The notes beneath the pieces are model-generated. The model did no database searches. It was not told the DNA's origin and saw only the letters and a list, made by a program, of their open reading frames with translations. This document shows positions 15,108 through 48,671 of a stretch of DNA of 64,000 bases, one piece after another. Within the stretch, counting starts at the first letter, position 1, and each line of letters starts with the position of its first letter. The translations under genes were made by a program, and so were the position numbers. Source of the stretch: Podarcis muralis (lineage: Eukaryota). The stretch lies in assembly GCF_964188315.1 (NCBI RefSeq), contig NC_135656.1, positions 121,396,001 to 121,460,000 on the forward strand, given 5' to 3'.

Positions 15108-15148
<41 letters not shown>

Positions 15149-18070: not shown

Positions 18071-18632
18071 CTACTGTGGGAAGCAGAATACCAAATTAGA
18101 TGGACCTTTGGTATTCTCCATCAGAATATCCAGATTCCCACCATCAAAGTCCAGGCCAACTCCCCCCACCTTCAACTCATGTCAAATTTTGGATAAACAC
18201 CTGTGCTTTCTTGCAGATATGTTTTTCTCCACCTCTGCACCTGCCCCTCAAGCCAGTATATTACAGAAGTGAACCTTATTCCCCTTATCATTATGAAAAT
18301 CATAGTGATCTATCATCATTCTTGCCAAAGCTCAAGAGACATTTTGGGAAACTGTGTAAACATCAGAATCAAGATTGGTGTGATGTTACTTACTGCGCCT
18401 TGGTAATGTGGCACACAGAACATCTCCTGTGTCAGAGATACATTGAGTGAGAACTGGCAGAAGGGACATGGGAAATACTACGTGAAGTCCAATGGCTCTG
18501 AAGCCATAGCTGAACACCACCCATATTGGTGGTGCAGCTTTGGTCTTGCAAGACGTTTTGTCTTCTTCTGATTAGCTGGTTCAGGAGGTGAGAGGATCCA
18601 CTCACAAGACACATGTAGGAAGCAAAGCCAGA

Positions 18633-21600
18633 ATGAGATCCCTGCTGCTTCTGCTGCTACTTCTTCTGCTGATGCCCCATGGAGTCTTTGGAGACCTAAA
18701 GACAAAATGCCCCTTGAATCTGATCAGGGAAGAAAATGAAGCACACAATTATTACCGGCCAGGAGACTTCCTCATTAGTGGGATCATATCTCCAAAATAT
18801 TTCTCTGAACAGGATCCATACAACTTTTCCCAGCCTCCATTCGCCAGGTTTCGTGTGTAAGTAATTACCGTATGTCTAGGTGGGTGTTATGTTTCTCTGC
18901 CTCCAATGTTTCCTGTTTACCAAGGAAATAGCCTGGAAAGGGGAATCTGTAGCAATTGAGATATTGTTGTATTGTTGGGGGATAATATCTCATTATCCTT
19001 GGCCATGCTGCAAAGGCAGATTTAGGGGATCACACAACCAGTTTGGATGCCTCAACTGCTGGTCAGAATGGAGTGTGAGAGGTGGAGGGGCACAAAAATT
19101 TGGCGTTGCACGGGGTGCCACTGACATTTGAGACTCCAAGGTTGTCCACTGCATGCTGACTGGGGCAGATGGGAGTTGGAGTCAAAGAACAGCTGGTGTT
19201 CTAATATTCCCACCCGTTTTACTTTCTGGTTCCCTTGGTCGTCCCTGGTGAAGTGATCTATCTGTGCTGTGCTACCGTGATGCCTTTTGAAGGATGTAAT
19301 GCTAGAATGCAATTCAGCCTTATCACAGATCAAAATGACGCATTGAATGACAGCACTGGCAGGTGGGTGGTGGAGTGGCTGCTGCAGGCAAGTAGCTGCC
19401 AGGATTTGAATGTGGGAGGTCTTCCTTCCTAGCGCAGAAGGTTATTTTAAAATCCTGCTTAGCTAAATGAAAGCTTTCCGCCCCCCTCCTAACCCCCTTT
19501 CCTTTTGTATCATTAGATTGTAAGCGGGTGGACCAGGACAGGCAGAAGTATGAACGAGTCCTAAGTCCAATTGATTGAATAGCGCTTCCTGCCAAGTATA
19601 TGGATTTGGGGTTGCAGCCTTATTCCCCTTCTAGAGTATGGACAAAGTTCTCTATTTTAACAAAGTGGAACTTACAAAACAGCCCTTTGAAACAACAAAG
19701 ACTAAGGAATAAACTGCAGCCTTTGTGGAAATTTCAAAAAAAAAAGTTATTAATTTTCTTTTTTCAAGATTGTGTTCTTTTCCTCTTCTGCAAGGAAGCA
19801 TGAATTTCCCCATTTTTATTCTTAAGTGGTCCATGAGTTTTCACCTTACAAAAAGGATAAGTCCCTCTCACACTCTGCCACCAACATGAAGACAATTATT
19901 TTGGGGTCAGCAATTATGAGATTCATATTGCCTAAAAGGCCCCTTAGATGTGACTTTCCCCCCCCCCCATTAAATCCTGATAAGTAGTTTGACGGTTTTT
20001 AATTGCTTCAATTTTTGCAGTCCATCATCTAGGTTCCACTGGCACATCTTATCGTTCTTGTTCACCATCCAAGAGATAAACCACAATCCCCAGTTCTTAC
20101 CCAACATCACCCTGGGCTACAACCTCTATGAGAACTATTTTGATGCCAGGACCACTTCTGATGCCATGCTAGACCTGGTTGCAGGTGGGGAAAGCAACAT
20201 TCCCAACTATAAGTGCAGGAAATGGAATAACCTTCTGGCTGTTCTGGAGGCGGCCGACTCTACACTCTCAAAAGAGATTTCTGCCATGTCAGGCATCTAC
20301 AAAATCCCACAGGTATGAAGGGAATGGTAAGAAAGAGCATCAAAAAGTGAGAAAAGTATGGAAAAGTTCAGGGCTCTTTTCCCCCCTAAATCCAGCCTTC
20401 ACCAACCCGGTATCATCCAGATTTTGTGGACTACATCTCCAATTTGTCACAGCCAGCACAAATGTTGTTAGATATTAATCATTTCAGGTTAATAAATATC
20501 TGGTCTTTATCCTGGAAGCAAAACGAAACACTAATCTTTTCCTTTCCTTGCTAGGTCAGTTATGGGTTGGTTCCTCAAGTTCTTGATGATAAAACTCAGT
20601 TCCCTTTTCTGTACCGAATGGTCCCCAAAGAAGAAAGCCAATACTTGGGTATTATCCAGTTGCTCCTGCATTTCAGATGGACATGGATTGGCCTCTTAGC
20701 TCCAGAGAACGATGATGCAGAAAGATTTATCAGTGGCTTGATGCCTCTGATGATCAGCAATGGGATTTGCATTGCTCTATCAAAAATAATTCCAGAAAAG
20801 AATCCACATCTAATGTTCAGTTTGAATGAACCCTTTGTCCTATGGAGACAACTGGGTGTATTTGTTTACTATGAAAATACTCGCATGGGGTGGATCCCAA
20901 TCATGACACTACAAGCAGCACTTGGGGAACAAATTGGGCCAAAAGTCTGGATCACAATAGGTTTAAAAGACATCAATGTGTTTTTATCTTATCCTCCTTA
21001 TTTATTCCAGTACATCCATGGGTCTTTGTCCTTCATAATGAAGATGGGGGAAAGGACTAAGCGTGACTACTATAACCCATCTTCCTACATTCTTCATCAC
21101 TTCTGGCAGAAAGCGTTTCATTGTTCATATTCAAAACATGAGCTGGCCGTGAAAGGTTGGAGAAGATGCACAGAGAACAAGAAACTGGAGATGGTGCCTG
21201 AAGAGGAGCTGCAGAGAGCCCTGTCTCAAAACAGCTACATCAATTACTTCAATGTCCAAGCTGTGGCACATGCCTTAAATGCTGCATATTCAGCTAGATC
21301 AAAGTGGATGTTGGTGGCTGGTGGAGGAGACATATCGGAACATCAAAGGCTACAGCCATGGCAGGTATTTTCTCTCCCTTTCTGCAGACTGCAGTACATT
21401 GCCCCAAAATGTGACATCAAATTTACAAGTGAGACCCATTTCTGAGGCAAATCCAATTCGTGAGGCTCCTGATAGAGGTAAAAAATAATAATTGCTCATT
21501 ATGCTTATAATGGGAACTCTCTTCCCAGTGCAATGCTTCCTCCACCGTGCCCAAGTAAATTTATATTTATAATAATAATAATTTCTTATTTATACCTCAC

Positions 21601-24600
21601 CCATCTGGCTGGGCTTCCACAGCCACACTGGGTGGCTTCAAACAAAATATTAAAATACAGTAATGCATCAAACATTAAAAGCTTCCCTAAACAGGGCTGC
21701 CTTCAGATGTCTTCTAAAAGTCTGGTAGTTGTTGTTCTCTTTGACATCTGGTGGGAGGGCGTTCCACAGGGCAGGTGCCACTACCGAGAAGGTCCTCTGC
21801 CTGGTTCCCTGTAACTTGGCTTCTCGCAGTGAGGGAACCGCCAGAAGGCCCTTGGTGCTGGACCTCAAACATTTATATACAGACCTTAAACATTTATATA
21901 CAGCTATTTGTCAAAAGAGCACAAGACAGTTCTCGATACAGTAAAACAAGATAATAAAATAGAGCTCAAATCAGTTCTTGAAACAAAACAACTACAGGTA
22001 ATATAATACAAAATACAAAAATACAAAAATGTGTTATATCAAGATCTAACCTTTCTTTTGTGTAATGAACTTATTGTGTAAAAAGATTTGTGATTTTATA
22101 TAAAATGTGGTCTAAAAATGTTTAAATAAATAGAATGCCTGAAAAAGGCATATAGTTTAGTTGAGCTATCAGAGGCAGATTTGGGGCAATGTAACTGGTT
22201 CCCCTGTGCTGGGCACACGCAGAATGGAGGGTGAGAAGTGAGGGGCACTAAATTTTGGGCTTCCACAGGGTGCTACTGAAATTGGGGAAACCCTGGCCCC
22301 AATTGGTAACAGCTCAAAGTGAGCAATGCTGAGATAGTCAGTATAGTTTTATATTTCCTTAATGCTGCTGTATCCTTTTCATTTCAGCTCCACCTTTTTT
22401 TAAGAGAAATTCCATTTCTGAATACTTCAATGGGCAGGCTATATTTGGATGAGAATGGAGAGCTGCCAGGCAACTACAATATTGAGAACTGGATTATGTT
22501 TTCCAATAAGTCTCGTGTTAGAGGAAAAATTGGGAGCATAGAGAGGGGCGCCTCCCCTGACATAAAGTTTACCATTAATGCAAAAGCCATTGTCTGGCCC
22601 CAACAGTTTAACAAGGTATGAGACTCCTTATGTCACATAACAAATATTAAACTCCAATTAGTACTTAGTACTTTATATGGAAGCAGGAGGGGACACGGGT
22701 GGCACTGTGGTCTAAACCACTGAGCCTAGGGCTTGCCGATCAGAAGATCAGAATCCCTGTGAGGGGGTGAGCTCCCATTGCTCGGTCCGTGCTCCTGCCC
22801 ACCTAGCAATTCGAAAGCACATCAAAGTGCAAGTAGATAAATAGGTACCACTCCAGCAGGAAGGTAAACAGTGTTTCCGTGAGCTGCTCTGGTTTCATCA
22901 GAAGCGGCTTAGTCATGCTGGCCACATGACCTGGAAAAACTGTCTGCAGACAGACGTCGGCTCCCTCGGCCAGTAAAGCGAGATGAGCGCCGCAACCCCA
23001 GAGTTGTTCGCGACTGGACTTAACTGTCAGGGGTCCTTTACCTTTACCTTTTACTTTATATGGAATTTCAACTAAAATCCTTTCCACAAATATTCCATTG
23101 AATATTGTGCTGTGCTGGGAACTGCACTTAATAGTCTGTGATGCACCAGCATCTCTTAAGTTTATGTAGATAGCGTTTTTATACTTGTCTTTAAATACTT
23201 TATACTTTGAACTGAACTGTGTGGGCAAGGAATTTTCTTAACCGTGCACTCTGAAAAAGGCTGACAACTGGAGAGCAAGCATACTCTGATGTTCTGCTGG
23301 AATGTGCTGCTGGAGGTGCAGGTAATTTGCTGATCGCACTGGTTAAGGTGTGAAATGCTATCAGGAACAGGTTGTGGGCCCAGTATAACAGGTTATGAGT
23401 CCGGTGGCTCACAGGTCTAATGCAGACTTTACTTGGGTTCTGATCTCTGATGCCAAAAATGGTGTAGGGGATAAGACTTGTGAAATCATAGTTCAAATCC
23501 CCGCTCAGCCAAAACGAACCTCACTTGGGCTAGTTATAGTATCTCCGCCTAGCATAGCACACAAGGTTGTTTTTAGGGGTGGATATAATAGTTTTCTTTT
23601 TTAGTTAATTGGGAGAAAGGTGATTTTTATATTGTTGTTGTTGTTTAGTCGTTTAGTCGTGTCCGACTCTTCGTGACCCCATGGACCAGAGCACGCCAGG
23701 CACTCCTGTCTTCCACTGCCTCCCGCAGTTTGGTCAGGCTCATGTTTGTAGCTTCGAGAACACTGTCCAACCATCTCGTCCTCTGTCGTCCCCTTCTCCT
23801 TGTGCCCTCCATCTTTCCCAACATCAGGGTCTTTTCCAGGGAGTCTTCTCTTCTCATGAGGTGGCCAAAGTATTGGAGCCTCAGCTTCACGATCTGTCCT
23901 TCCAGTGAGCACTCAGGGCTGATTTCCTTAAGAATGGATAGGTTTGATCTTCTTGCAGTCCATGGGACTCTCAAGAGTCTCCTCCAGCACCATAATTCAA
24001 AAGCATCAATTCTTCGGCGATCAGCCTTCTTGATGGTCCAGCTCTCACTTCCATACATCACTACTGGGAAAACCATGGCTTTAACTATATGGACCTTTGT
24101 TGGCAAGGTGATGTCTCTACTTTTTAAGATGCTGTCAAGGTTTGCCATCGCTTTTATCCCAAGAAGCAGGAGTCTTTTAATTTCGTGACTGCTGTCACCA
24201 TCTGCTGTGATCATGGAGCCCAAGAAAGTAAAATCTCTCACTGCCTCCATTTCTTCCCCTTCTATTTGCCAGGAGGTGATGGGACCAGTGGCCATGATCT
24301 TCGTTTTTTTGATGTTGAGCTTCAGACCATATTTTGCGGTCTCTTCTTTCACCCTCATTAAAAGGTTCTTTAATTCCTCCTCACTTTCTGCCATCAAGGT
24401 TGTGTCATCTGCATATCTGAGGTTGTTGAATTTTCTTCCGGAATCTTAATTCCGGCTTGGGATTCATCCAGCCCAGCCTTTCGCATGATGAATTCTGCAT
24501 ATAAGTTAAATAAGCAGGGAGACAATATACAGCCTTGCCATACTCCTTTCCCAATTTTGAACCAATCAGTTGTTCCATATCCAGTTCTAACTGGTGTTTA

Positions 24601-27195
24601 TATTACTAGTAACAAAAGTCACAGTATTAATACAGTGGTAGAAGAGAAACGCCCTTTACCACAATGTAGTGACATCCCCTGATAGTTTCATCTTCCCCTT
24701 CTATCCCAGGACCCAGAACTCTTAGAAAAAAATTAAATAATAATAAGTCAGGAGACATTTTTTTAGTTAGCATCATCAGGTGATGGTATATTTAATTTCT
24801 GCTCTTTATCAGTATGTTTCATTGCAGCATTTTGTTTGGTGCTATTATTCTGCAATTATTATATTGTTTTTGTCTATTCTGTCCATTGCCTTGAGCCTAA
24901 GTTTCTTTAGAAATGATAGATATAAATGTTGGAACAAGCAAGCAGACACACCAAAGTGTTAGAATTCCTGCTCCATGATTGCAGTCATGGGATTGTTGTC
25001 TTTCACATGACGTGGTATGTTTTGACTCCACAGAGTGGGAAGTGATGGAGACAGGATGTTTGTGTTACTGTGTTCCATGAAGTGGGACTATTGTCCTTTG
25101 TTCTTTTTCTCTTTGCTGTCTGATGCTAGAGAGAGAGGGAACCATGTTGCAGTGCTCCGTGTGTGTTTATATGTAAATAAAGTACCGTATTTTTCACTCT
25201 ATAACACGCACCAGACCATAACACGCACATAGTTTTTAGAGGAGGAAAACAAGAAAAAACATATTCTAAACGAAATAGTGGATATATGATTTTTGTGGTT
25301 CATGCTGTGGCCACAGACATGTGATCTGACAGTGAGTTTGGAGTAGCCCAATGCAAAAATCCTGAGGATCCATGTGGATCCATGCTTTGTAACCACGGAG
25401 GAGGGAAGGAAGGAGAACCATGGATCCTCTGCTCACGACTGCAGCAGATCCCCCCGGCCACCCGCAGGCATTCGCTCCATAACACGCGCAGACATTTCCC
25501 CTTACTTTCTAGGAGGAAAAAAGTGAGTGTTATGGTGCAAAAAATAGGGTAGATTAGCCAAAATGCTGAGTTGCTGAGGTCTGTCACGCAAGGTGCGCAA
25601 ACTCTGCCCATCCCTAAGTGTGCCAGTGTCGGTTGGCATCGGTCGCTGTGATGTTCGGGCTGAAGACAGCTTTTGAAGCTCCCGAACAATCGACCAGGAG
25701 GGAGAGAACATGCCAGTCGGGCATGTGTCTCTACCAGGGTCCTACTAGAGTGTAGGCCGAACTCCTGGCACAAAGAGGTTTCCCTTCCGTGCTGTTTTGC
25801 ATCAAAAGTGCTTCCCTGGAAAAAAGCACATGGGCTCCGTGAGATCCCCTTCAGTACTCCATAGGCACAGATGCTGCTAACACTTCACCCTTGATGAACC
25901 TTCTTCTCTGCATGGCTAGGCTGTGCCTCTCTCCAGGTGTACCAAAAGCTGTCTGCCGGGCTATACCAAGGTGGTTCAAGAAGGACAACCACTTTGCTGC
26001 TATGCTTGTGCTCCATGTGCAGAAGGGATGATCTCCACTGAGGAAGGTGAGTGAGTCGAAGCTTAGGAAATTCCTTAGGAGAATATAAACAGGATGAAGA
26101 ATCACTCAGAGAGACTTTCAGTGAAGATTCTCAAAACATCTCTGAGCATTTATAAAGAATTTTACCTCTCCTTCCCTAATAAACAGGTGTCATCTCCCCC
26201 ATAAGAATCTTTTCCCCCAAAGAAGTAATAGAATAGATTGTTTGGTTGTATATGATGCTGAAGCCACTCCTTTCCCCCCTTCAGATGCAGACCATTGCAT
26301 CAAATGCCCAGAAGATCAGCATCCAAACAAGGACCAAGATCAATGTGTCCCCAAGATTATCACCTTCCTGGCTTATAAAGAACAATTGGGGATCATCTTA
26401 ACTTCTGTTACCGTATTCTTGTCTTTAACAACAGGCATTGTGTTAGGAATCCTCGTTAAATACAAGGAGACTCCCATAGTGAAAGCCAACAACCGAGACC
26501 TCTCCTATATCCTCCTCTTCTCCCTTCTGCTTTCCTTTTTCTCCTCCTTCCTCTTTATTGGGAGGCCACGGAAAGTGACCTGCCTTCTCCGACAAACAGC
26601 CTTCAGCATCATCTTCTCGATTGCTGTCTCTTCTGTTTTGGCAAAAACCATCACTGTGGTTCTGGCCTTCCTGGCCACAAAGCCAGGGAACAGGGCGAGG
26701 AGATGGCTGGGGAAAAGTCTCGCCAACTCCATTGTCATTTCCTGTTCCAGTATCCAAGTTGTCATCTGCACCATCTGGCTAGGTATCTCTCCCTCATTCC
26801 CAGATTCTGACATGAACTCCCGGGCTGGAGAGATCATCCTTCTATGCAATGAAGGGTCTGTGGCCATGTTTTATGGTGCCCTTGGCTACATGGGCTTCCT
26901 GGCTGCCATCTGCTTCACGGTGGCTTTCCTAGCCAGGAAGCTGCCTGGGGCCTTCAATGAGGCCAAGCTGATCACCTTCAGCATGCTGGTCTTCTGCAGT
27001 GTTTGGGTGTCTTTTGTGCCCACCTACCTGAGCACCAAGGGGAAATACATGGTAGCCGTGCAGGTCTTCTCTATGTTGGCCTCCAGTGCTGGGCTTCTGG
27101 GCTGCATCTTCATCCCCAAGTGCTATATTATTATACTGAGGCCTGATCTGAATACAAAGGAGCACCTGACAACAAAAAGTAAAGATGGCATCTAA
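18633..27195 (+). CDS. V2R gene C, complete six-exon vomeronasal type-2 receptor (863 aa)
   Basis: Exons 18633-18856, 20021-20312, 20555-21364, 22388-22615, 25920-26046, 26285-27195; GT-AG junctions, phases consistent, total 2592 nt, no internal stop; same domain order as gene B. Confidence 0.92.
21575..21870 (-). mobile_element. L2 3' fragment
   Basis: [41 protein letters not shown], typical L2 ORF2 end. Confidence 0.8.
22689..23053 (+). mobile_element. Sauria SINE
   Basis: GGGACACGGGTGGCACTGTGGTCTAAACC head; TTTACCTTTACCTTT tail. Confidence 0.88.
23632..24593 (-). mobile_element. Bov-B LINE, 5'-truncated (~960 bp)
   Basis: 250-aa open frame [19 protein letters not shown]...[11 protein letters not shown]; (CAA)n tail. 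Confidence 0.93.
25185..25549. mobile_element. Tigger-like MITE
   Basis: TIRs CCGTATTTTTCACTCTATAACAC / GTGTTATGGTGCAAAAAATAGGG; TA on both flanks. Confidence 0.75.
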
Positions 27196-28166: not shown

Positions 28167-28889
28167 TGTTAGAATAAAGTTATAAACTCAAACAAAAAAG
28201 CAGTTGGTCCCTGGCAAGGCCCGCCCTGGCCAGCTTAGATCTCTGAAATCTGAGGCAAGTATATCTGGCTGTCCACGATCACAATCCACGCAGAAAACAA
28301 CATTTAGGTTTGTTGGGGGTTTATTTAAACAATGAGATGACCACATAGAGAGGTCGCACTGTGGGAGTGGCCCAAATGGCTACAATAAATGTGATAATGT
28401 GTACCCCTGTAAATCCCTGAGTGTGCTTCTAATAGAAAAGTTATGGTAGCCTGGCATTTTAAGAAACTGCTGATTTTGTAAATTGCCACACACACCCCCA
28501 ATTGGGGTAGAAATACAGCTAATATGTAAATCACAAAGATACAGCACAAACCTAGAACATAAGCTGCTACATGATGCAAATGGTGACACGTAACACAGGT
28601 TCCCAACACGCACACGAACAAAATGTATTCATGCAAGGTCATAGCAGAACATGGTGGGAATCAGAGCTTAGTCAGCAGAAACAGCCAATGCTAACAATTT
28701 AAATGAGGTAACGGTGTATATGATTGGTGGAAATTGAAATGCTTTGTTTGAAACTTTATAAATACCTTTGGGCGCGGTTGCAACTTTTGCAGAGCCATCC
28801 TATTGTAACCTATCGCTTTGCAATAAACAATGTTGGAATTCATCCTCTTCAATCTCTTGTGTCTTTTTGGCTCGATACAAGAATTAAGG
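28167..28889 (+). mobile_element. Possible solo LTR
   Basis: Starts TGTTAG, has TATAAATA at ~28757 and AATAAA at ~28822, ends ...CAACA; no clean TSD found. Confidence 0.4.
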
Positions 28890-28972
28890 CATATTTGCTT
28901 GCAACAACACAACCCACCCAAAAGACAATTTATACATTCGTCAGCCTCTTTAAAAGGTGTATCAGATACCAA

Positions 28973-29857: not shown

Positions 29858-31086
29858 TATGTATAAATAACATCATCATTGTCCTTATTATTTAATAGGG
29901 CATCTCTATTTAAATCAGAGAAATGTTGGAGGGTTTATGTGTGGGGGTTGCATGTATTCTGTAGCAATCAGGTTCTCAAACAATATCATTATCAGTCAGG
30001 GCACAAGGATGTGCAGAAGACAGGCTCTCTTTAGCACAGGGGATATTTTATGTTTCAAACCTTTCAGGCAAGAAATTGTCTCCCCTTCCCCTTGATTCTC
30101 ATGTTTAGCTGGTTGGTCTCACAGACAACACTTGTGCAATTCCCTGAAGCTATTCCAAGAATAGGAATGATGACATGGAGGAGAACAATTGCATTCTGAT
30201 CCCTGTAGGACTTGAGGCGCAGGTGCAGAAGTAGAAGAAACCTTGTTTACAGAACTTCACTGTCTGGCCTTGAGGTGGGTCACTGTGAGGGTGAAAGGTG
30301 AGCTTCGCCTTTAGCCGATGAAGCACCTTCATAAGGGTCATGAACAAGATATTCACTTAGGATTTATTCAAATATAATCCCCTGACATGGAGTAGTTGCT
30401 TCTAAACATTAAATTCGTTTTGTTTTGTTTGACAGCAGGGGTTGGTAGTCTTTTTCAGACTGTGGGCTGCATTCCCTTCTGGGCAAACTTTGGGGGCCCA
30501 CATGCCAGTGGCGGGCAGTTCCAGAGGTAAAATCTGACAGACTAATGGGAAAGCAGCCTAGTTTCTATGCGCACTCCTCCATCCTCCACTTAGGCTAGGA
30601 TGGCCATACGTCTGGACGTATGGCGACCCACGGCCAAAAAACCCTCTGGATTTTGAAATATGGCAACCCTAACTCTTAGGCAAGTATGTGGCCATGTTAG
30701 AGTTCCAGGACACATTTCAACCAGGCAAAAGCACACAAGTAGGATACAAAGCAGGGTAAGTAAACAGTATGTGAGCTACCATGCCCTTCTAGCAGAGACA
30801 CCATCTTGCGCCCAATATTGAGGGTGCCCATCACACGTCACACGTGTGACGTCACGCACCTGGTGCACATTGCGTGTGTCTGATGTCATGCATCGCATTG
30901 TCAGGAGGAGACCAAGCACGGCTTCAATCACCGGCAGCTCCTCCTTTCTCTTGCTCGGGAGACCCTATGTCCCCTCCCAACTGGTTGTGACAATAAACTA
31001 TTATATGGGGTGTACAGTCGACACACAACTTTTGCAGGGGTTGAATTTGGGTGATAGTGTGTAAAGTTTAAATCACATATATTCTG

Positions 31087-33007
31087 TTGTTGTTTTTTAA
31101 ATGATATTTATTGAAATTTTCAAAAAAAATCCAGAAAGAAAAAAAAATTTAAAAACACTCGACGTTTACAATCCTTATTTTCAATAACCTATTTCCATGA
31201 CTTCCCCACGCCTCCCCTTCTTGTATTCCAATTCCAATTATTAGTTCAACAAGTTCTTGTCCCCAATTTTTAACCTTATTATATTTAGTTCATTATTATA
31301 TTTAGTTCATTTTATATAACCAATTTTGACTTATAAACATCAGTCTTTGTACATCAGTACTTATTCTTAAAATCTTTTTCTAAGGTCGACCCCAATTCCC
31401 TTCCACGAATTCCCCATTTTTATATTGGTAACAAAACAGAATTAAAAAAAAATCAGAATATAATTTTACACCCTTTGGATTCCCAAACCCCATCCCCCCT
31501 TTCCCGGTTTCGATCCCCAACAAATGTCCATCAATCTATCTGCTATCAGCCTGGAGACCTCACGTCCGAGGCTCTTAATTCTCTCTCAGTTCCTCTCTGC
31601 CGGTTTTTTTGATAGTCCTTTGTATTAAACACCAAATCTCGGAGAAGCTCTGTCCCAATAATGTCCATGTTTCTTCCAGCCATACCTCCATATTTAAAAG
31701 TGGAGCTCAAATCTTGTTTCTTGATCCTTTTAAGTCCAAATGTCCCAAAAGCTCCTACTTCCACCTTGGTCAAATTTGTGATCCATAGGTCTTCAGATCT
31801 CCACATAAGAAGATCCCTCCATTCTTCATTTTCCAATTCAAACCAGATTTTCATCATCCAGTTCTTATTTTCCTTTGTATCCATCTTGACAGGCCTCTGG
31901 CTCTCCTTTGTCATTTGCAGCATTACAGCTCCTCCTTCATTTCCCTCCTGATCAGCATGTATCTCTTTCTCCACTTTCTCAAATTTCTCAGATTTATTTT
32001 CTTGTTCAGCTGCATGGACTTTTTGAGTCAAGTCCTTTCCATATTCAGTGAGTTTATTTACTGTTACATTCAGGGTTGTAACACTTGTAGCCAAAACATC
32101 GCTTTGACCTTGTAACTTTCCCAAGAGAGAAAAAACCTTATCCAGCTCAGCCTGTATTTTTCCATCTGCAGCCATTCTTGTAATGTCCCTGAACCCCCTC
32201 TAGAGGGATTCTGGTTACTTAGTATTCCTTCCAATTCCAACCCAAAAGTCCAGTTAACTTGTTTCAGTTCTTCTTTGTTTTCAACAATTTATAACCAAAT
32301 TGTAAGAAATATAACCAGCAAAGACAACAGAAACAAAGTTCTCTTTTTTTCCCCAGCTTTGACAGCTAGGTTGACAGCTGTCAACATCTTCTATATCTCC
32401 TCAACAGGCTCTCTCATGGATCACTCCCGGGTCCCGGGGGGGTGGAACTTCAGTTCTCAAAATTAACTCTTATCCTCCAGCAAGATTGCTTGTACTGCCA
32501 AAACGTGAAATTAATAACTTTTATCCACTAAGGAAGAAGATGTTCTCTCGACCTTAGTTATCTAGTCCTTGCTTTAAGTTGTTTACAAGGCGGGGAGACG
32601 GACTTCCTCTTTGCGCCTTCCCCGATCGTGCCAAATCCAAACAAAAATTTTTCCTTTTATAAATCCAATTTCCATATTACTCACGGGTTGTTACTTTTAG
32701 TCCAAATGTTTAAAGGAAGAAGTCAGCGCTGTCCGACCATGGCATGCAGCTTCGCTCCTAGGAGAAGCAGTCGACTCTCAGCACCGCGCCGCTCCCCATC
32801 CCCCGTTCCGAAGCCTTTAAAAAGGCTTCTTTGCGGGTCGAGGGCACAAATGGTGCCCGCCGAGTCACCAGGTCCACAGGCTTCAGCGCCTGTGGTTTCT
32901 GAGGGTCCCCGCGTCACCGCTGCGGCAGGACCCGTCTCCTATAGAGCCGATTCCCTCCGGAGCTCGGAGGGAATCCGCCAGTAGTCGATGGCGCTAACCC
33001 GGAAGTC
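31087..33007 (-). mobile_element. Non-autonomous L1-related retroposon, 1.92 kb, single ORF
   Basis: 5' end GACTTCCGG, CpG-rich 5' UTR, one ORF, AATAAA plus A/CAA tail; 18-bp perfect TSD TAAATCACATATATTCTG at 31069-31086 and 33008-33025. Confidence 0.85.
31546..32175 (-). CDS. 209-aa ORF of the 1.92-kb element; N-terminal coiled coil resembling L1 ORF1p, C-terminal part not recognised
   Basis: MAADGKIQAELDKVFSLLGKLQGQSDVLATSVTTLNVTVNKLTE heptad pattern; no RT or EN motifs. Confidence 0.6.
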   Translation of the reverse strand: MAADGKIQAELDKVFSLLGKLQGQSDVLATSVTTLNVTVNKLTEYGKDLTQKVHAAEQENKSEKFEKVEKEIHADQEGNEGGAVMLQMTKESQRPVKMDTKENKNWMMKIWFELENEEWRDLLMWRSEDLWITNLTKVEVGAFGTFGLKRIKKQDLSSTFKYGGMAGRNMDIIGTELLRDLVFNTKDYQKNRQRGTERELRASDVRSPG

Positions 33008-33959
33008 TAAATCACATATATTCTGGACAGCCCCTTGGGATGCCCCCACCTGCCCATCCTTACTTCTGGAACCAGCATGCCAAACAGGTCTTAACCCCGC
33101 CCCATCCTGCCCCCCCCCCAGCTTCTAAAGCTCTCTGCCTTCCTTCCCTTTAATCTGGGCTATTTTAGACAGGGCACAGCAAAGGGTGGAAAAGAGAAAC
33201 GTCATGGAAAATGGAGTAGGAAGTTGATAATGTAAAACAAAAACTTATTACGTATTGGAACATGATTTCAGATTCTGGGGGGGGGTTAAAAGGTGAAAGT
33301 GTGAGTGAACTAAAGACTTAATTTAATCTACGTTTGTTATTGGTATGAGCTTTCGTGTGCATGCTCATAGTTTATTGCCTCTCTGTCCAGCTTACGCTTC
33401 CTCTGGGATCCTTTGTTCCTCTGGGATCCTTTGAAGCGAAGCTCCGAGAGAAGAGCAATCAGCAGATGCACAGCAGTCAGTATGAGAAAGAAAAATAAAT
33501 CCAGTCCAGACAGCTTCTATCTAAACTAAGAAGCTTTATTTACATGCCAAACAGAAAATCTTTCCACCAGAAAATTCCGACATCCTCTCCGGTTGAGAGC
33601 CATTCTCTAACTGGAAAACGAAAGCACTTTCACAGCACAAACAACATAGCTGTGTGAGGCAATATCCTGGCTCTGTGGAGCCCCTCCCTCAGGCATGAGA
33701 CACAGAAAGGTTAACCCTTAACCACCACACTCTACAAATCCCGTGTCATGGTCAGATCACTTCCTATTGAGATTTAGGATGTCAGCATCTTTTTCCCTCC
33801 GCAGAGACGGGGGACCTGTAAGGAAGGTTTGCTCTCAGAGGCTGATGAATCCAGTGGGATTCCAAACAGCTCTGGGGGGTTGAGATGGGCTATTGACACA
33901 ATCGCCCCTGAGTGCCCTCTCCCACTAGACTGGTGACTGGGAGCAGACGCCAGGACCAT

Positions 33960-34380: not shown

Positions 34381-34471
34381 CATCATCAACAACATGATCA
34401 GATGTTGCAGAAATTTCACTAGGATTGTAATTTGGATTACACTTTTAATTGTAATCTTCCCTTAATTTTAG

Positions 34472-35766
34472 CAGGTGATGAAAATGACAGTCATTGTTCT
34501 CGGGTCGCATCAGAAAGAACCAAGCATGAAGTCAAAGGAAGGACCTTTCAAGATCAAGAGGAAACAAGATCACAGATAAAAAATCTAGAAGAAAATGGGA
34601 GGAATAAAGGCCTTCTAACGCAGACTGATAATGGCCATCAAATCCCCGTCCAGAAAAAACATCATAAGGGAAAGGGAACAAATGAGAGACCTTTGTGTGG
34701 CAAAACATTCAAAAATAAATCTAGCTTCAACTCACACTGCAGAATCCACACAGAGGAGAAACCATGTAAATGCTTGGTATGTGGAAAGAACTTCAGTGAC
34801 AGCTCAGGCCTAAAATCTCATAAAATAATTCATGCAGGACAGGAATCCTATGAATGCCTAGAATGTGGAAAGAGTTTCAGTCGTTACTCATACCTTAGAA
34901 AGCACCAGGAGGTCCACAGCGAGGAGAAACCACTTAGCTGCTTTGAGTGTGTAAGGAGCTTCATTCACAGAAGAGGCCTTAAATCACATCAAACAATCCA
35001 CAGCAGGGAGAAACCACATACCTGTTTTGAGTGTGGGAAAAGCTTCACTTACAGCTCACGCCTTGTATCTCATCAAAAAATTCACACGGGGGAGAAACCG
35101 TATACCTGTTTTGACTGTGGAAAGAGCTTCCGTCTAAGCCAAGGTCTTCTTGTTCATCAAAAAATCCACACAGGAGAGAAGCCATATAAATGTTTGGAGT
35201 GCGGAATGAGCTTTGGTTCCAGCTCAAGTCTTACATCGCATCAAATAATTCACACAGGAGAGAAATCTTATAAATGTACAGAGTGCGGAAGGAGCTTTGC
35301 TCACAGGGCTACCCTTACTTCACATAAGAGAACCCACACAGGGGAGAAACCATATAAATGCTTGGTATGTGGAAAGAGCTTCAGTCAGAGTTCACACCTT
35401 AGTTCACACAAGAGAACTCACACTGGTGAGAAGCCGTATAAATGTTTTGAGTGTGGGAAGAGCTTCAGTCAAAGTTCACATCTTACTGTGCACGAGCGAA
35501 TCCATACAGGGGAAAAACCATATAAATGTGAGACATGTGGAAAGAGCTTTAGTAACTGCACATACCTTGTTAGCCACCGCAGAATCCATACGAGAGAGAA
35601 GCCATATAAGTGCTTTGAGTGTGGTAAAACCTTCAGCCAGAGTTCAAGCCTTAGTACGCATCGAAAAATTCACAGTGGGGAGAAACTGCATGCATGTTTT
35701 GAATGTGGAAAGAGCTTCACTACAAGCGTAACGCTTCAAAATCACCAAAGAATTCACAGAGGGTAG
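34472..35766 (+). CDS. C2H2 zinc-finger gene ZNF-1, terminal exon, 12 canonical fingers, ends at a premature TAG
   Basis: CxxC...HxxxH repeats with TGEKPY linkers; acceptor TTTTAG/CAG; GAG-to-TAG in the linker after finger 12; upstream exons not identified. Confidence 0.85.
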
Positions 35767-36829
35767 AAACCGTATACCTGTTTTGGACTTCCGGAGGCGG
35801 CGCGACCGGTAATGGCTGCCTTTTCCGAGTAAGGAGAAGGGAGCTCCGCTGTAAACGGGTCGTCCGCTACGGCGAAGCGGAGACCCATTCAGAAAAACCA
35901 CAGGTGGCAGAAGCCTGTGGTCCCGGGACCCGGCGGGCGCCAGAAGCAGCCCCCAAATCGTTGAAGGGACCCCGTAAGGGGCTCCGGATCGTGGAGGGGG
36001 TAGCGGCGCTGTGGGTCGTTGCGCAAACAGCGAAGTGAAGCCGCATTGCTGTTGCCGGTCAGCGCTGTCCTTTCTTCCTGCAATTTCTGAACTTTGGAAA
36101 CTACAACCCGTGAGTAATTTGGACTTTGAGAACTTTTTGAAACTTTTGACAACTTTCTGAAACTTTTTGGGAACTTTCTGAAACTTTCAAAACTTTTTTA
36201 AAAAAGTTAAAATTCGGCTGAAAACGGAGTGAGGATAAGCAGGAAGCCCACCTCCCGCTATACTGAACTCTAAGCAAAGAGCAGGAGGAGTGGAGACAAA
36301 AAGTTATGTGCTAACCAACTGCTGGCACCCTATTAAAGTAGACTTTTGAGGAAAAGACTTTGAGTTACTACTTTCTTTGGTCATATTGGGTGCAATGAGA
36401 TTCTTCTTCTGATGTACTAGTGGATTATAAAATAAATAAGAACCTCTGGTGCTGGAGCTGCCTGGCTGAGCTTCAGTCTGCAACTGTGGATACATTGAAT
36501 TTAGACTTTGAAACATTCTGAGCAGGAACTGGATACTTTTGAAACTGTTGCAGTCTAGGCACTGCTAGAAACACTGTTCTGTTTTAAGTTTACTCTGCTA
36601 AAAATAATATATTGTGGAGGCTGACGGATATGGAATTAAATTTATAAGTTTGATATGGATTTGATCTTTTCCCTGAAGACGTATTAAGCTCCCTCTAGAG
36701 GATTTTGGACTTACAGCAGTGACTTTGTTTTACTGTCCCTTTCCCGGCTTCTCTTTGACTATTGTTTCTGGGCCTTCACTTTCTCATGGGAACAACTTGG
36801 ACTGACCTTGGATTATAGATAACTTTGGA

Positions 36830-37819
36830 ATGAGTGGCGCAAGGAGAAGAGGAAGAACTAAACAAACAACTTTGACTTTATCTGCAGCCTCACAGCGTAG
36901 ATCATCTGTGCCGGCTTTGCCTTCCACTTTGCCTCCAGACATAGAGGCGGCCTCCCTAATACAGGCAGGGGAGGGTGAGACGGAGGAGCTGCACCTGGAA
37001 GATATGGCTTCAGGGACAAGTAGCTCTGTCTTGGAGAAAATTTTTGAGAAACTAGAGGCTTTGGATAAGAAGGCTGACTTGCATACAGCTAAAATTGAAC
37101 AGAACACAGAAAGTTTGAATAAGCTGACTGGACAAGTTGCACAGAATGTCCAGTCTATTGGAGAATTAAAGGAGGCTGTAGGTGAAAATCGGAAACTGGC
37201 TGAAGATACTAGTCAAAGAGTAGAGGAACTTGAGAAGGAAGTAAGACCACTCAGTAAACAAGTTGGAGAACATCAGATTTACTTTTTGATGACAGAATTG
37301 CGAAACAGGGAGACCAACTTGAGGATACGCTCGATTCCAGAGGTGGAAGAAGATAATTTTATTGAATTCTTGACTAAAGAATTTGCCAAGTTCTGGAAGT
37401 TAGAGGAAAAAGACTTTAAAATAGTATCCGCTTTCAGGCTTGGCAGAGTCAGAAGGATAGAGAAGCCCAGAGACTGTTTGATAACACTGAGATCAAAGGA
37501 GGAAAGGGACAAAATTTTGGGCCTGCACTACGAAAAGTCACTTGACATTTTGGGCAAGAGAATTGAAATCTACAAGGATATCCCTAAACAGTTGCTGGAC
37601 CTAAGATCTAACTACACGGAATTGGCAAGATTGTTAAGAAGCAACGCAATTATATTCAGGTGGGAGTTTCCACAAGGATTATCCTTTACCCACAGAGGGA
37701 GAAAGATCAAAATCAAAACAGTGGAAGATAGAGATAAGTTTCTGGGAGCGCACGGAGAAGACCTCCACAAAGGACTTGGACTACCAGCGCCTGCAGAGTT
37801 TAGAAAAGATGAGAGATAA
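36830..37819 (+). CDS. L1 ORF1 protein (coiled coil, RRM, CTD), 329 aa
   Basis: Heptad region followed by RETNLRIRSIPE...AFRLG...PRDCLITL...IEIYKDIP...FRWEFP, typical L1 ORF1p motifs. Confidence 0.85.
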   Translation: MSGARRRGRTKQTTLTLSAASQRRSSVPALPSTLPPDIEAASLIQAGEGETEELHLEDMASGTSSSVLEKIFEKLEALDKKADLHTAKIEQNTESLNKLTGQVAQNVQSIGELKEAVGENRKLAEDTSQRVEELEKEVRPLSKQVGEHQIYFLMTELRNRETNLRIRSIPEVEEDNFIEFLTKEFAKFWKLEEKDFKIVSAFRLGRVRRIEKPRDCLITLRSKEERDKILGLHYEKSLDILGKRIEIYKDIPKQLLDLRSNYTELARLLRSNAIIFRWEFPQGLSFTHRGRKIKIKTVEDRDKFLGAHGEDLHKGLGLPAPAEFRKDER

Positions 37820-38594
37820 AGTGAGAGACTGGTTACACTATGCTCAGATTAAAGAAGTGTTTAAAAATGACAAAAAGTTAGGATTCCAAGTGGAAAAGTC
37901 AAAGTTAGAAACTGAACTGTTAGAACCTAAGACTAAAGTACTTTCAAAAATGTATAACTTGCTGCTGAAATGGAACACACAAGACGAAATGGTAAAATCA
38001 ACAATGATAAAATGGGCTCAGGATATCGGGCACAATATTATGTTTGAAGATTGGGAAAGGTTGTGGACCTCTGGGCTGAACTTCACTGCATGTAATGCGT
38101 TGAAGGAAAATGTGATGAAAATGATGTATAGATGGTACATGACCCCTGTTAAATTAGCTAAAATATACCATTCGTCTGATAGTAAATGTTGGAAATGTAA
38201 GGAAAATGAAGGAACATTTTTTCACCTCTGGTGGACCTGCCCTGGAGTGAAGGCCTTTTGGGAGACAATATATAATGAATTAAAAAGGGTGTTTAAATAC
38301 ACCTTTACTAAGAAACCAGAGGCCTTTCTCTTGGGTATCGTCGACCAGAGTGTGTTAAAAAAGGACAGAACATTCTTTATGTATGCAACAACAGCAGCAA
38401 GAATATTGATTGCCAAGAACTGGAAAACTCAGAAGCTACCCACTGTGGAAGAATGGCAGATGCAGCTGATGGACTATATGCAGCTAGCCGAGATGACCGG
38501 CAGAATCCGAGACCAGGGAGAAGAAAGGATGGAAGAAGACTGGAAGAAATTTAAGATTTATTTACAAAAATATTGTAATTTGGCTGAGTGTTGA
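37809..38594 (+). CDS. L1 ORF2 C-terminal remnant with CCHC motif (no EN, no RT)
   Basis: CWKCKENEGTFFHLWWTC; AARILIAKNWK; frame open without stops. Confidence 0.75.
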   Translation: MRDKVRDWLHYAQIKEVFKNDKKLGFQVEKSKLETELLEPKTKVLSKMYNLLLKWNTQDEMVKSTMIKWAQDIGHNIMFEDWERLWTSGLNFTACNALKENVMKMMYRWYMTPVKLAKIYHSSDSKCWKCKENEGTFFHLWWTCPGVKAFWETIYNELKRVFKYTFTKKPEAFLLGIVDQSVLKKDRTFFMYATTAARILIAKNWKTQKLPTVEEWQMQLMDYMQLAEMTGRIRDQGEERMEEDWKKFKIYLQKYCNLAEC

Positions 38595-38842
38595 ACTGGA
38601 TGCCAGAGTAGAAAACAATTGTCTATCACCAAATTAGATTTAAGGATGAATTATATGCTAATCAAAACTAAGACTTTGAGCAAAATGATAATTTGTTTGA
38701 AATTAATTTAATAATGATGCAAGTGTATGCGGGAGGTGTGGGGGAGTCCTATGCAACAACTGAGAGATGTTAAATTGACAATGATGAATTGTGTTATTTC
38801 TGATGTATGTTTTATGTGAAAATCTTAATAAATATATTATAA

Positions 38843-39470
<628 letters not shown>

Positions 39471-41174: not shown

Positions 41175-41982
41175 GGATAGAAAGCTGACTGCACCTGGGA
41201 TTTTATGCTGCACCATTTTAATCAATGTGTGCCTCTTTCCAATGTGTTTGGAGGCCACTTGATGGTGGATACACAAACAAAAAGCACAAATCTGTTAGGC
41301 CACATTCACACCACATATCCAAAGCCCCATGAAACCACCTAAGATTTCTGGGAGCTGTTTTGCTGGTTAAGGGTGCTGAGAATTGTGACAATAAACTATT
41401 GTATGGGGTACAGAGTTTTGACACGCAACGTTTGCAGGGTGATAGTATGTAAAGTCGAAATCACATATGGCCGGGACAAACCGCTGGGAAAGCTCTCTGC
41501 CCTGTGCAAAAAGAGCTTTAAAACTCTCTGCCTGCAAGTCAATTGTATATATTTTTACTTTTTCGGTGTTTTCTTCCCCCTGTAAAAGATCAGGACTGTG
41601 CAGTTTTGCAGTTAAGCGACGGTGATGGAACAGGGTGAGGTTGGTGCCAGTTTTGTGTCTCTGCAGGGTCTGTGAAGCTGAAATGAAACATTTGCACCAG
41701 CCGCTTCTTGCTGGATTCTCTTCTCACCTCTTACCTTTGCAACAACAACAACCCTGTGAGGTGGGCTAAGCTGTGAGCAAAATCCGTGAAACTGCACATC
41801 CTTGTAGGGTTTGTCTGTGTTCTGCCCCCGGCCCCATCTTCTGAGTAACCTTGTGAGGTGGGCAAGGTTGAGATGGTTGTTCTGGCACTATGGTTTTGAT
41901 ATTGCAAAAAACAGCCTTAGGAGATCTGGGATGGGGTGCTTATTTTTCTTTACCAGGGATGAGAAAGAATTCTTTTGCATTC
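41175..41982 (+). repeat. Duplicated ~0.8-kb module; inverted copy at 50935-51840
   Basis: Shared blocks such as GTGACAATAAACTATT and GGGATGAGAAAGAATTCTTTTGCATT; partial third copy at ~30985-31086 plus 33026-33140. Confidence 0.85.
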
Positions 41983-43175: not shown

Positions 43176-44722
43176 TTATCCCATGTGAGTTCTTTTATGA
43201 TAAGTAAAGCTATATCCATGTGCAAATCTCTTTCCACAGTCCAGACATTTATAGGGTTTCTCCCCTGTGTGAATTCTTTGGTGCGATGTAAGGCTTGTGC
43301 TGTGACTGAAGTTCTTTCCACACTCAAAACAGGTATATGGTTTCTCCCCTGTGTGAATTCTTTGATGAGATTCAAGGCTTGAGCTGTGAGTGAAGCTCTT
43401 TCCACACTCAAAACATGCATACAGTTTTTCACCTTTGTGAGTTTTTTGATGTGATGTAAGGCTGGTGCCCTGGCTGAAGCTCTTTCCACACTCAAAGCAC
43501 TTATATGGCTTCTCTCCTGTATGGATTCTGCGATGGCAAACAAGGTATGTGCAGTTACTAAAGCTCTTTCCACATGTCACACATTTATATGGTTTTTCCC
43601 CTGTATGGATTCGCTCATGCACAGTAAGGTGGGAACTCTGACTGAAGCTCTTCCCACACTCAAAGCATTTATACGGCTTCTCACCAGTGTGGGTTCTCTT
43701 ATGTGAAGTAAGGTGTGAACTCTGACTGAAGTTCTTTCCACATTCCAAGCATTTATATGGTTTGTCCCCTGTGTGGGTTCTCTTATGTGAAGTAAGGCTA
43801 CCACTGTGAGCAAAGCTCCTTCCGCACTCCGAACATTTATAAGATTTCTCCCCAGTGTGAATTCTTTGATGCAATGTAAGACTTGAGCCGTGAGTGAAGC
43901 TCATTCCGCACTCCAAACATTTATACGGCTTCTCCCCTGTGTGGATTTTTTGATGTATTGCAAAGCTTGAGCTGTGACGGAAGGTCTTTCCACAGTCAAA
44001 ACAGGTATACGGTTTCACCCCTGTGTGAATTCTTTGATGATATACAAGGCCTGAGCTGCTAGTGAAGGCCTTTCCACACTCAAAACAGGTATACGGTTTC
44101 TCCCCTGTGTGATTTTTTTGATGATATACAAGGCCTGAGCTGCTAGTGAAGGCCTTTCCACACTCAAAACAGGTATACGGTTTCTCCCCTGTGTGAATTT
44201 TTTTATGATCTACAAGGCCTGAGCTGTAAGTGAAGGCCTTTCCACACTTAAAACAGGTATATGGTTTCTCCTCGCTGTGGACTTTGTGATGTCTTTTAAG
44301 GTTTGAGTGGTGACTGAAACTCTTTCCACATTCTAGGCATCCATATGATTCCTGTCCTGCGTGAATTCTTTCATGTGATTTTAGGCCAGAGCTGTCACTG
44401 AAGTTCTTCCCACACACCAAGCATTTACATGGTTTCTCCTCTGTGTGGATTCTGCAGTGTGAATTGAAGCTAGACTTACTTTTGAATGTTTTGCCACATA
44501 AAGGTCTCTCATTTGTTCTCTTCCCCTTCTGATGTTTTTTCTGGACTGGGATTTGATGGTCGTTATCAGTCTGCATTAGAAGGCCTTCATACCTCCTATT
44601 TTCTTCTTGGTTTTCCTCTTGTGGTCTTGTTTCCTCTTGATCTTGAAAGGTCCTTCCTTTGACTTCATGCTTATTTCTTTCTGATGAGACCCGAGAACAA
44701 TGACTGTCGTGTTCAGCACCTG
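43176..44722 (-). CDS. C2H2 zinc-finger gene ZNF-2, intact terminal exon, 15 canonical fingers plus 1 degenerate finger
   Basis: 528-aa open frame; acceptor CTTTAG/CAG; paralog of ZNF-1 in opposite orientation. Confidence 0.9.
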
Positions 44723-44924
44723 CTAAAGTTAAGGGAAGATGACAATTAAAAATGTAACCCAAATCACAATCCTAGCGAGACTTCCTGTAACATCTGATGA
44801 TGATGATGGTGATTTTATTATTCATACCCTGCCCATCTGGCTGGCTTTCCCCAGCCACGCTGGGCAGCTTACAGCATATATAAAACATCAAACTGACCAA
44901 GTGTCAACACAAGGGGGCTTATGA

Positions 44925-46560: not shown

Positions 46561-46619
46561 ATACCAGGAGAATCAGACTCTTTCATCCTCCCTGAGGAGC
46601 TCAGAAGGCAAAACAAGGG

Positions 46620-48671
<2,052 letters not shown>

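Follow-up and report, generated by a model that had tools for sequence, protein, structure and literature searches.

The question raised by this locus is whether an L1 retrotransposon of a lizard has given rise to a shortened family, which keeps a protein of the ORF1 type and dispenses with ORF2. Elements of this kind are known in mammals as HAL1 (half-L1): they are L1-derived and non-autonomous, encode ORF1p and have no ORF2 (PMC5753468, PMC4859970, PMC5786205). An element found on the minus strand of a 64-kb window, i.e. the whole stretch of DNA that was analysed, is best explained, with a probability of about 0.8, as a HAL1-like, ORF1-present, ORF2-less non-autonomous L1 derivative of a lacertid (Podarcis-type) lizard, mobilised in trans. 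Its position, insertion marks, protein and relatives are described below, and the alternative readings are evaluated where the evidence bears on them.

Layout, insertion and ends of the element

The features of the element are reported in Table 1. A preliminary description, made from the same DNA, had placed a minus-strand element with an intact 5' end at 31069-33025, and all of the features then listed, including the single ORF of 209 aa, the AATAAA signal and the A-rich tail, were found again at the expected positions. The 5' UTR had also been called CpG-rich, and its first 400 nt indeed show a GC content of 55% and a CpG observed/expected ratio of 1.0, to be compared with 0.34 in the rest of the 5' UTR and 0.32 across the whole window. 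Only one sense ORF of at least 80 aa is contained in the element, and when the element sequence was shuffled 2,000 times, an ATG-started ORF as long as 209 aa arose once. No match was found by scanning the element against Rfam.

Table 1. Features of the element, in coordinates of the plus strand of the window.
Feature	Position	Strand	Remarks
Whole element	31087-33007	minus	1,921 nt between target-site duplications
5' target-site duplication, CAGAATATATGTGATTTA	33008-33025	minus	matches 31069-31086
3' target-site duplication, CAGAATATATGTGATTTA	31069-31086	minus	matches 33008-33025
5' UTR, first 400 nt, CpG-rich	32608-33007	minus	opens with GACTTCCGG (first 9 nt of the element, 32999-33007); homology to L1 5' UTR
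5' UTR, remainder, CpG-poor	32176-32607	minus	no DNA similarity to the adjoining L1 detectable
209-aa ORF (mini-ORF1p), ATG start	31546-32175	minus	sole ORF of the element
3' UTR	31087-31545	minus	last ~225 nt homologous to L1 3' UTR
17-nt tandem duplication	31276-31317	minus	within the 3' UTR
3' UTR motif, GGGAGGYGTGGGGRAGTC	31199-31216	minus	common to the 3' UTRs of the element and of the L1
AATAAA	31107-31112	minus	within the 3' UTR
A-rich tail, AAAAAACAACAA	31087-31098	minus	short; 3' end of the element

The two copies of the target-site duplication, already described as perfect, are identical at 18 out of 18 positions. When the element and one copy of the duplication are removed, the flanks align without interruption across the junction to a paralogous repeat, located at 41383-41489, and this uninterrupted site confirms the insertion. 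Target-primed reverse transcription, previously deduced from the duplication and the polyadenylation features, is backed also by an empty-site paralogue; the L1-type marks found are the duplication, the polyA signal and the tail. The element is a complete, young (recently inserted) copy. An A-rich target site of the TT/AAAA type is typical of mammalian L1; the duplication does not start in this way, and this was counted against the reading as an L1 derivative.

Both ends of the element are related to those of an L1 located at 35786-38852 in the same window. In the 5' UTRs, where ordered motifs had been noticed previously, 32666-33020 (355 nt) is about 66% identical to 35773-36128, and the two elements run in register from their first base. 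At the 3' end, 226 nt (31082-31307) are about 63% identical to positions 38632-38856 of the adjoining L1. Elsewhere in the window GACTTCCGG is found once, where the L1 at 35786 begins, while GGGAGGYGTGGGGRAGTC, which had been reported from both 3' UTRs, occurs exactly twice, at 31199-31216(-) and 38731-38748(+), with 0 occurrences expected by chance. No DNA similarity to the adjoining L1 was detectable in the remainder of the 5' UTR (32176-32607). Judged from these DNA comparisons, the 5' and 3' parts of the element derive from an L1-clade LINE.

The absence of ORF2 sequence, also part of the preliminary description, was borne out by searching the element by tblastn with the C-terminus of the neighbour's ORF2 and two RT ORFs of the window, none of which gave a match at E≤0.1. 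Likewise, no Pfam RT or EN domain was found in the element, and no BLASTP match was obtained between the 209-aa ORF and the C-terminus of the adjoining L1's ORF2. Having no copying enzyme, the element must borrow one from full L1s. The L1-homologous ends, the lack of RT and EN and the marks of target-primed reverse transcription support the earlier proposal of a non-autonomous L1 derivative mobilised in trans.

The adjoining L1 is itself internally deleted. It has the same first 9 bases as the element, homologous 5' and 3' UTRs, a perfect target-site duplication and no EN or RT; unlike the element, it retains a full ORF1 of 329 aa, together with the last 272 aa of ORF2. Its ORF1 has a database relative 97% identical. 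This copy has the look of a recent derivative of an active L1, formed by deletion, and not of a member of the family to which the short ORF belongs.

Descent and predicted structure of the protein

The relation of the 209-aa ORF, here called mini-ORF1p, to L1 ORF1p was analysed by using hhalign, which compared the profile of the element's subgroup with a profile of 20 lizard L1 ORF1p sequences. The latter represents genuine L1 ORF1p; the mouse protein (2ldy) is matched with an E of 0.001, and one member of the profile is named in UniRef as an 'L1 transposable element RRM domain' protein. The comparison gave a score of 45.3 and a probability of 81.7%, with a collinear alignment over the whole ORF length (190 columns), in which Met1 falls on Met59 of ORF1p. 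As a control, the reversed profile scored 14.4; 150 column shuffles had a mean of 15.0 (sd 2.8, maximum 25.5), and 150 block shuffles reached 26.9, the top of all 300. The score of 45.3, against at most 26.9 in the shuffles, upholds the previous suggestion of a remodelled ORF1-derived protein. The relation was detected by comparing profile with profile only: the family profile failed against a single ORF1 sequence (3.4%), and BLASTP between the ORF and the adjoining ORF1 gave a weak match (E 0.013, 21% identity). Neither the pooled profile of 19 family sequences (22.5%) nor the second subgroup of the family, taken alone (2.3%), matched ORF1p significantly.

With respect to the neighbouring ORF1p, mini-ORF1p lacks about 58 N-terminal residues and 14 aa within the coiled coil, and its RRM and CTD are shorter by about 44 aa and about 17 aa, respectively; the gap within the RRM, as read from the alignment, would correspond to the beta3-alpha2-beta4 region. 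The coiled coil of the ORF covers residues ~2-80 and is followed by an acidic linker; N-terminal remnants of the RRM occupy ~100-148 and what is left of the CTD ~149-185, before a conserved basic tail that ends in RASDVRSPG. According to the preliminary description, there is no match to the RRM or CTD of the neighbouring ORF1 beyond the beginning of the ORF; this has to be corrected, as the profiles detect collinear remnants of both, from the first part of the RRM and the start of the CTD. An intact RRM and CTD of the Transposase_22 type was not found in the 209-aa ORF. On the basis of these alignments, mini-ORF1p descends from L1 ORF1p, with which it remains collinear apart from internal deletions.

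When the ORF and 12 relatives were scanned against Pfam, no ORF1 model matched at E≤1, and only coiled-coil noise below the threshold was seen. The result says little by itself, because the full-length ORF1 of the adjoining L1 was likewise missed. Matches to PDB entries by sequence and by profile, such as that to the spike HR1, were rejected as chance coiled-coil similarity, and searches of the ESM Atlas, with the whole protein and with residues 95-209, gave scores of 0.81 or less, which is the noise level.

The structure was predicted by using AlphaFold2. With 3 aligned sequences the pLDDT was 37.6; with 12, the prediction was confident at the N-terminal helix only, which spans residues 2-81 (pLDDT 73-93 over residues 1-70), while the C-terminal 130 residues are of low confidence (pLDDT below 50 for residues 119-207). 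Residues 1-85, modelled as a homotrimer, scored 0.59, against 0.02 for the best control. Among known pairs of one chain 21 out of 30 reached the mark set for the score, and among single chains none of 23; the contacts of the three runs agree to at least 86%, and partner pLDDT is at least 76. The predicted contacts are parallel, in register and heptad-spaced over residues 3-60. The N-terminus of mini-ORF1p is thus predicted to form a parallel trimeric coiled coil, and in the models the ORF starts like the coiled coil of ORF1p, as had been proposed. L1 ORF1p, built of coiled coil, RRM and CTD (mouse 2ldy, human 2yko), would have this N-terminal trimer in common with mini-ORF1p; the two are collinear along the whole ORF, and the C-terminal half of the shorter protein is of low confidence.

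Relatives of the protein and alternative readings

About 20 clusters of relatives, 171 to 215 aa long and 22-56% identical, were found in public data, none longer than 215 aa. The closest to the ORF of the element is 56% identical, so that among the database sequences its exact subfamily is represented by this copy alone. When 1.84 billion representatives were searched exhaustively with HMMER, 11 clusters were returned, all of 215 aa or less; a word search with the profile adds others, among them Podarcis lilfordi CAI5761913.1 with 5 sister entries, whose records are 63-137 Mb long. The P. lilfordi relatives, annotated as 'hypothetical proteins', sit on at least 5 chromosome-scale records. The ORF belongs, as anticipated for the element, to a diverged family of proteins of about 200 aa, dispersed over several chromosomes in the congener. 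No related loci were found in the viral and metagenome contigs searched. Within the window, weak tblastn matches of family members at 9502-9630 and 28646-28930 correspond to unrelated sequence and were discarded as chance.

The short protein might instead be the normal ORF1 of an unseen autonomous L1 lineage, the element being an ordinary ORF2-deletion product rather than a self-sustaining family. The adjoining L1 shows that internally deleted L1 RNAs insert in this genome with both ends intact and a target-site duplication, and every contig from which a database relative comes is short, at 2 kb or less, so that the sequence 3' of the ORFs is not visible. In the exhaustive search, however, all proteins were within 215 aa and none was linked to an ORF2, and this reading is given a small chance only.

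Conservation along the ORF is uneven, with 53% at the N-terminus, 60% in the tail and 28% in the middle. The best conserved stretches, being both ends of the ORF, could be cis-acting RNA elements, and the C-terminal half has no confident fold; both points fit an element moving purely as RNA with L1-like ends, in which the ORF would be a decaying relic, untranslated and unselected, and its apparent conservation would come from the listing of open frames in databases and from RNA constraint. Against this, start, stop and length are all retained among relatives at 22-56% identity, and still so at 22-35%, with many in-frame indels. In a substitution-only neutral simulation, fewer than 1 run in 1,000 still had the ORF at 51% identity, and none of 4,000 had it at 44% or less; simulated frames are lost long before 22-35% is reached, although the argument from frame retention is subject to ascertainment bias, since protein databases list open frames only. 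The coiled coil also keeps its heptad pattern, and a trimer is predicted. Movement as RNA alone, with the ORF as a relic, is considered quite improbable.

A single accidental product without a family, either a one-off deleted L1 or a host-gene retrocopy, would agree with the presence of only one copy in the 64-kb window, but is barely credible given some 20 clusters of relatives and the P. lilfordi loci on several chromosomes; a host-gene retrocopy is excluded by the L1-type first base and both UTRs.

Possible propagation and comparison with known elements

For the element taken as a HAL1-like derivative, the following cycle is proposed. The CpG-rich first 400 nt of the 5' UTR are presumed to act as an internal promoter, which travels with the element, and the RNA would be polyadenylated at its own signal. 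Mini-ORF1p would trimerise via the retained coiled coil, and would help to package its own RNA or dock it onto L1 particles; target-primed reverse transcription by the ORF2p of an autonomous L1 could then insert a copy of this RNA in the genome. Selection would have kept the reading frame in those lineages that went on propagating.

It is also conceivable, though rather unlikely, that mini-ORF1p has lost the RNA-binding fold and that selection keeps the coiled coil and the basic tail only. Mixed trimers with autonomous ORF1p might bring the RNA into L1 particles to steal ORF2p, or might poison them in a dominant-negative fashion; the family would then be a long-lived parasite or suppressor of L1 at the protein level, with deep subfamilies in lacertids.

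Protein-coding non-autonomous LINEs are rare. Mammalian HAL1 and the element are alike in being L1-derived, in having an ORF1-type protein only, in L1-style insertion and in the presumed help of ORF2p in trans. HAL1 encodes ORF1p, whereas the protein of the element has about 60% of the local ORF1p length; its RRM is missing the second half, and its CTD is incomplete. No relationship in sequence to mammalian HAL1 is expected, since with a lacertid host the element should have arisen independently, from a lizard L1; for this reason it is filed as HAL1-like rather than as a member of HAL1 (HAL1, HAL1B, HAL1M8). In the literature found, HAL1 within the L1 clade is described for mammals only, and the search returned no paper on HAL1-like elements in squamates.

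HeT-A (Jockey clade) and Ag-Sponge (CR1 clade) have been described as ORF1-present 'bipartite non-autonomous LINEs', whose protein is proposed to multimerise with that of the autonomous partner (PMC5786205). Like the element, they combine the 5' and 3' portions of an autonomous LINE with one Gag/ORF1-like gene; they differ in LINE clade and host, and no telomere role or host function is indicated for the element.

If the family is maintained in a lizard in which several L1 families co-exist, the half-L1 strategy would have had an origin of its own outside mammals. Mini-ORF1p, reduced to a coiled coil and remnants, would be a natural minimal ORF1p, which could show the parts needed for trans-mobilisation, and the element offers a system for asking whether truncated ORF1 proteins aid or inhibit L1. 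It also accounts for a set of 'hypothetical proteins' annotated in Podarcis genomes.

Anatomy and insertion of the element

The preliminary description had proposed a 1.9-kb minus-strand retroposon with an intact 5' end, a CpG-rich 5' UTR, a single 209-aa ORF, an AATAAA signal with an A-rich tail and a perfect 18-bp target site duplication (TSD), and all these features were found, as listed below. The element starts with GACTTCCGG, a 9-mer found at just one other place in the 64-kb window, namely at the first base of a neighbouring, internally deleted L1. Its initial 400 nt show a GC content of 55% and a CpG observed/expected ratio of 1.0; the ratio is 0.34 in the remaining 5' UTR and 0.32 in the window overall. 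When the element was shuffled 2,000 times, an ATG ORF of this length arose once.

The insertion is of the L1 type. Once the element and one TSD copy are removed, the flanks align without interruption over the junction to a paralogous copy of the surrounding older repeat, which, judging from this alignment, can serve as a proxy for the empty site. Intact CpGs, the perfect TSD and the open frame point to a probably recent insertion.

Coordinates of the element and of other features of the window
Feature	Position	Strand	Details
TSD CAGAATATATGTGATTTA	33008-33025 and 31069-31086	minus-strand reading	18/18 identical
Element between TSD copies	31087-33007	minus	1,921 nt
Sole long sense ORF	31546-32175	minus	ATG start
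3' UTR after ORF	AATAAA at 31107-31112		459 nt, AT-rich, tail AAAAAACAACAA
17-nt unit TTATTATATTTAGTTCA	31276-31317	plus	tandem x2.5, inside element 3' UTR
Older repeat, two copies	30985-31101 and 41383-41489		~80-90% alike; element inserted into first
Neighbouring L1	35786-38852		35765-38873 with TSDs
C2H2 zinc-finger array	34432-35766 and 38854-39370		split by neighbouring L1
Class-C GPCR exons	9931-27195		vomeronasal type-2 / taste-receptor-like
337-aa ORF	9931-10944		class-C GPCR region
7tm_3	16207-17004 and 26242-27195		class-C GPCR exons
ANF_receptor	20567-21445		class-C GPCR exons
528-aa open frame	43176-44762	minus	~15 C2H2 zinc fingers; second zinc-finger gene of the window
RVT_1 ORF	46538-48136		separate non-LTR retrotransposon
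Further non-LTR retrotransposon	56508-59877		esterase-type (GDSL/OSK) ORF1, then RVT_1

Relationship to the neighbouring L1

When the element was compared with the rest of the window by sensitive blastn, two significant matches were obtained, both to the neighbouring L1. The first ~355 nt are 66% identical, in register from base 1 of both elements, and the last ~226 nt are 63% identical, the match ending at the tails; the ends are therefore L1-derived, and the previously reported likeness of the 5' UTRs holds. The same is true of the common 3' UTR motif, GGGAGGYGTGGGGRAGTC, found within the window only in these two 3' UTRs. Between these two stretches, 1.36 kb of the element, with the ORF, matched nothing else in the window at the DNA level by this search. 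No RT, EN or ORF2 C-terminal sequence was detectable in the element in any frame, in agreement with the claim that ORF2 is absent. The 13 nt directly upstream of both 5' ends, where the TSDs end (33008-33020 and 35773-35785), also co-align (TATATGTGATTTA and a ATACCTGTTTTG-like sequence), which may be fortuitous, or may reflect microhomology or a common preference at the 5' junction.

The neighbouring L1 has an intact 5' end and a complete 329-aa ORF1, but keeps no more of ORF2 than its final 272 aa, EN and RT being deleted. It is flanked by a TSD of 20-21 bp, (A)GAAACCGTATACCTGTTTTG. Since it is itself internally deleted, ORF2-less L1 RNAs do get inserted in this genome. Its ORF1 has its best matches among proteins of Podarcis muralis and P. 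lilfordi and among Logan contigs, one Logan protein being 97% identical, which marks the host as a lacertid of wall-lizard type. Two Podarcis muralis TRIM39-like E3 ligase models (P0032 and P0033) contain a stretch resembling L1 ORF1, with 53% identity across 60% of the neighbour's ORF1, and are either annotation chimeras or a fusion of L1 ORF1 to a TRIM gene.

Origin and family of the 209-aa protein

Searches of Pfam, PDB sequences and the ESM Atlas returned only coiled-coil noise. Profiles were then compared, using as target 20 lizard L1 ORF1p sequences related to the neighbour's ORF1; this profile matches mouse L1 ORF1p 2ldy (E 0.001), and one of its members is named in UniRef as an L1 RRM-domain protein. 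A subgroup made of the window ORF and four database relatives (P0001, P0003, P0004 and P0005) matched it with a probability of 81.7% (E 1.1e-5, score 45.3) over 190 collinear columns; an earlier 12-sequence profile had given 82.8%. As a control, the query alignment was permuted and rescored with hhalign: the reversed alignment scored 14.4, 150 column shuffles averaged 15.0 (sd 2.8, maximum 25.5) and 150 shuffles of 14-column blocks reached at most 26.9, the native score lying about 10 standard deviations over the null.

The alignment pairs Met1 of the mini-protein with Met59 of the neighbour's ORF1p (MAADGKIQAELDKVF vs MASGTSSSVLEKIF), followed by the coiled coil with a 14-residue gap; NWMMKIWFELENEEWRDLLMW...LW then stands opposite NLRIRSIPEVEEDNFIEFLTKEFAKFW, and GAFGTFGL opposite SAFRLG. 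About 44 ORF1p residues (RVRR...RIEIY) are missing at this point, after which KRIKKQDLSSTFKYGGMAGRN faces KDIPKQLLDLRSNYTELARLLRSN, and another ~17 are absent ahead of the mini-protein tail. From our reading of the L1 ORF1p structure, the first RRM elements presumably persist as remnants, the RRM having lost its second half and the CTD a portion. The proposal of a remodelled, ORF1-derived protein is thus upheld, while the statement that the rest of the ORF matches neither RRM nor CTD is not, the alignment being collinear over those 190 columns. A second family subgroup, used alone, did not significantly match the lizard ORF1p profile (2.3%), and the pooled family reached only 22.5%, in the N-terminal region; the derivation from L1 ORF1, established by profile similarity, therefore rests on the subgroup containing this copy.

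The protein belongs to a diverged, multi-locus family. A word-based search found two relatives of full coverage (46% and 37% identity), and more came from a profile search of a 90%-identity database. Among these, six proteins of Podarcis lilfordi, annotated as "hypothetical predicted proteins" (CAI5761913.1 is one of them), form a single cluster; the records that encode them measure 63-137 Mb, so that at least five chromosomes are involved. Two of the Logan clusters comprise 10 and 7 different variants, every one of identical length. When 1.84 billion cluster representatives were searched exhaustively with HMMER, 11 clusters were returned, all of 129-215 aa, and no family protein longer than 215 aa. 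A search of viral and metagenome contigs yielded no relative. That the short protein is the normal ORF1 of an autonomous L1 not yet seen, the element being a plain deletion product like its neighbour, seems unlikely.

In an alignment of 19 family sequences, pairwise identity ranges from 22 to 56% (median 40%), and nearly all start with MAAxGK, end with RASDVRxPG and a stop, and measure 171-215 aa, with many in-frame indels. Conservation is uneven: 53% for residues 1-35, 60% for residues 177-209 and 28% for the middle. In a substitution-only neutral simulation from the window ORF, the frame (start, stop and no internal stop) survived in 0.08% of the runs at 51% identity and in none of 4,000 at 44% or lower. 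Common ends and length at low identity, together with this simulation, argue that propagating lineages probably kept the frame under selection, bearing in mind that protein databases list open frames only; that the ORF is an untranslated relic is accordingly also unlikely, a little more so than a plain deletion product. A one-off accident or host-gene retrocopy is highly improbable, being contradicted by the L1-matching ends and by a protein family that includes P. lilfordi relatives.

Predicted structure and possible mobilisation

AlphaFold2, run with 12 sequences, predicts a single long helix at residues 2-81 (pLDDT 73-93 to about residue 70), the mini-protein beyond it being of low confidence. 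For three copies of residues 1-85 the complex prediction scored 0.59, while the highest-scoring of three controls gave 0.02; at least 86% of the contacts are common to the runs, with a partner pLDDT of at least 76. Of 30 proteins solved as same-chain pairs, 21 reached this mark, against none of 23 solved as single chains, counts that are only rough for this trimer, the calibration being based on two copies and on microbial proteins. The predicted contacts are in register (14-14, 18-18, 21-21 etc.), at heptad positions of residues 3-60, so that the coiled coil would be a parallel trimer like that of L1 ORF1p. The model supports self-association of the mini-protein, and agrees with the earlier suggestion of an ORF1p-like coiled-coil N-terminus.

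The element is real and well delimited, and most probably a young HAL1-like element. Its CpG-rich 5' UTR would act as an internal promoter, and ACTTCCGG is presumably an ETS-type motif. The mini-protein would trimerise and then either act in cis, on the RNA that encodes it, or dock onto L1 particles, ORF2p being provided in trans by an autonomous L1. Our literature searches brought up no account of such elements in squamates; HAL1, an L1 derivative encoding ORF1p only, is described in mammals, where it had several origins (PMC5753468, PMC4859970). It is classed with HeT-A and Ag-Sponge among the bipartite non-autonomous LINEs that possess an ORF1, and their proteins have been proposed to form multimers with the proteins of the autonomous partner (PMC5786205). 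According to a further paper, truncated forms of the human ORF1 protein are able to suppress L1 in trans (PMC5605252), so that a dominant-negative action of the mini-protein is also conceivable.

Among the other features of the window, the GDSL/OSK ORF1 and RVT_1 of the further non-LTR retrotransposon form an arrangement which we take to be CR1/L2-like.
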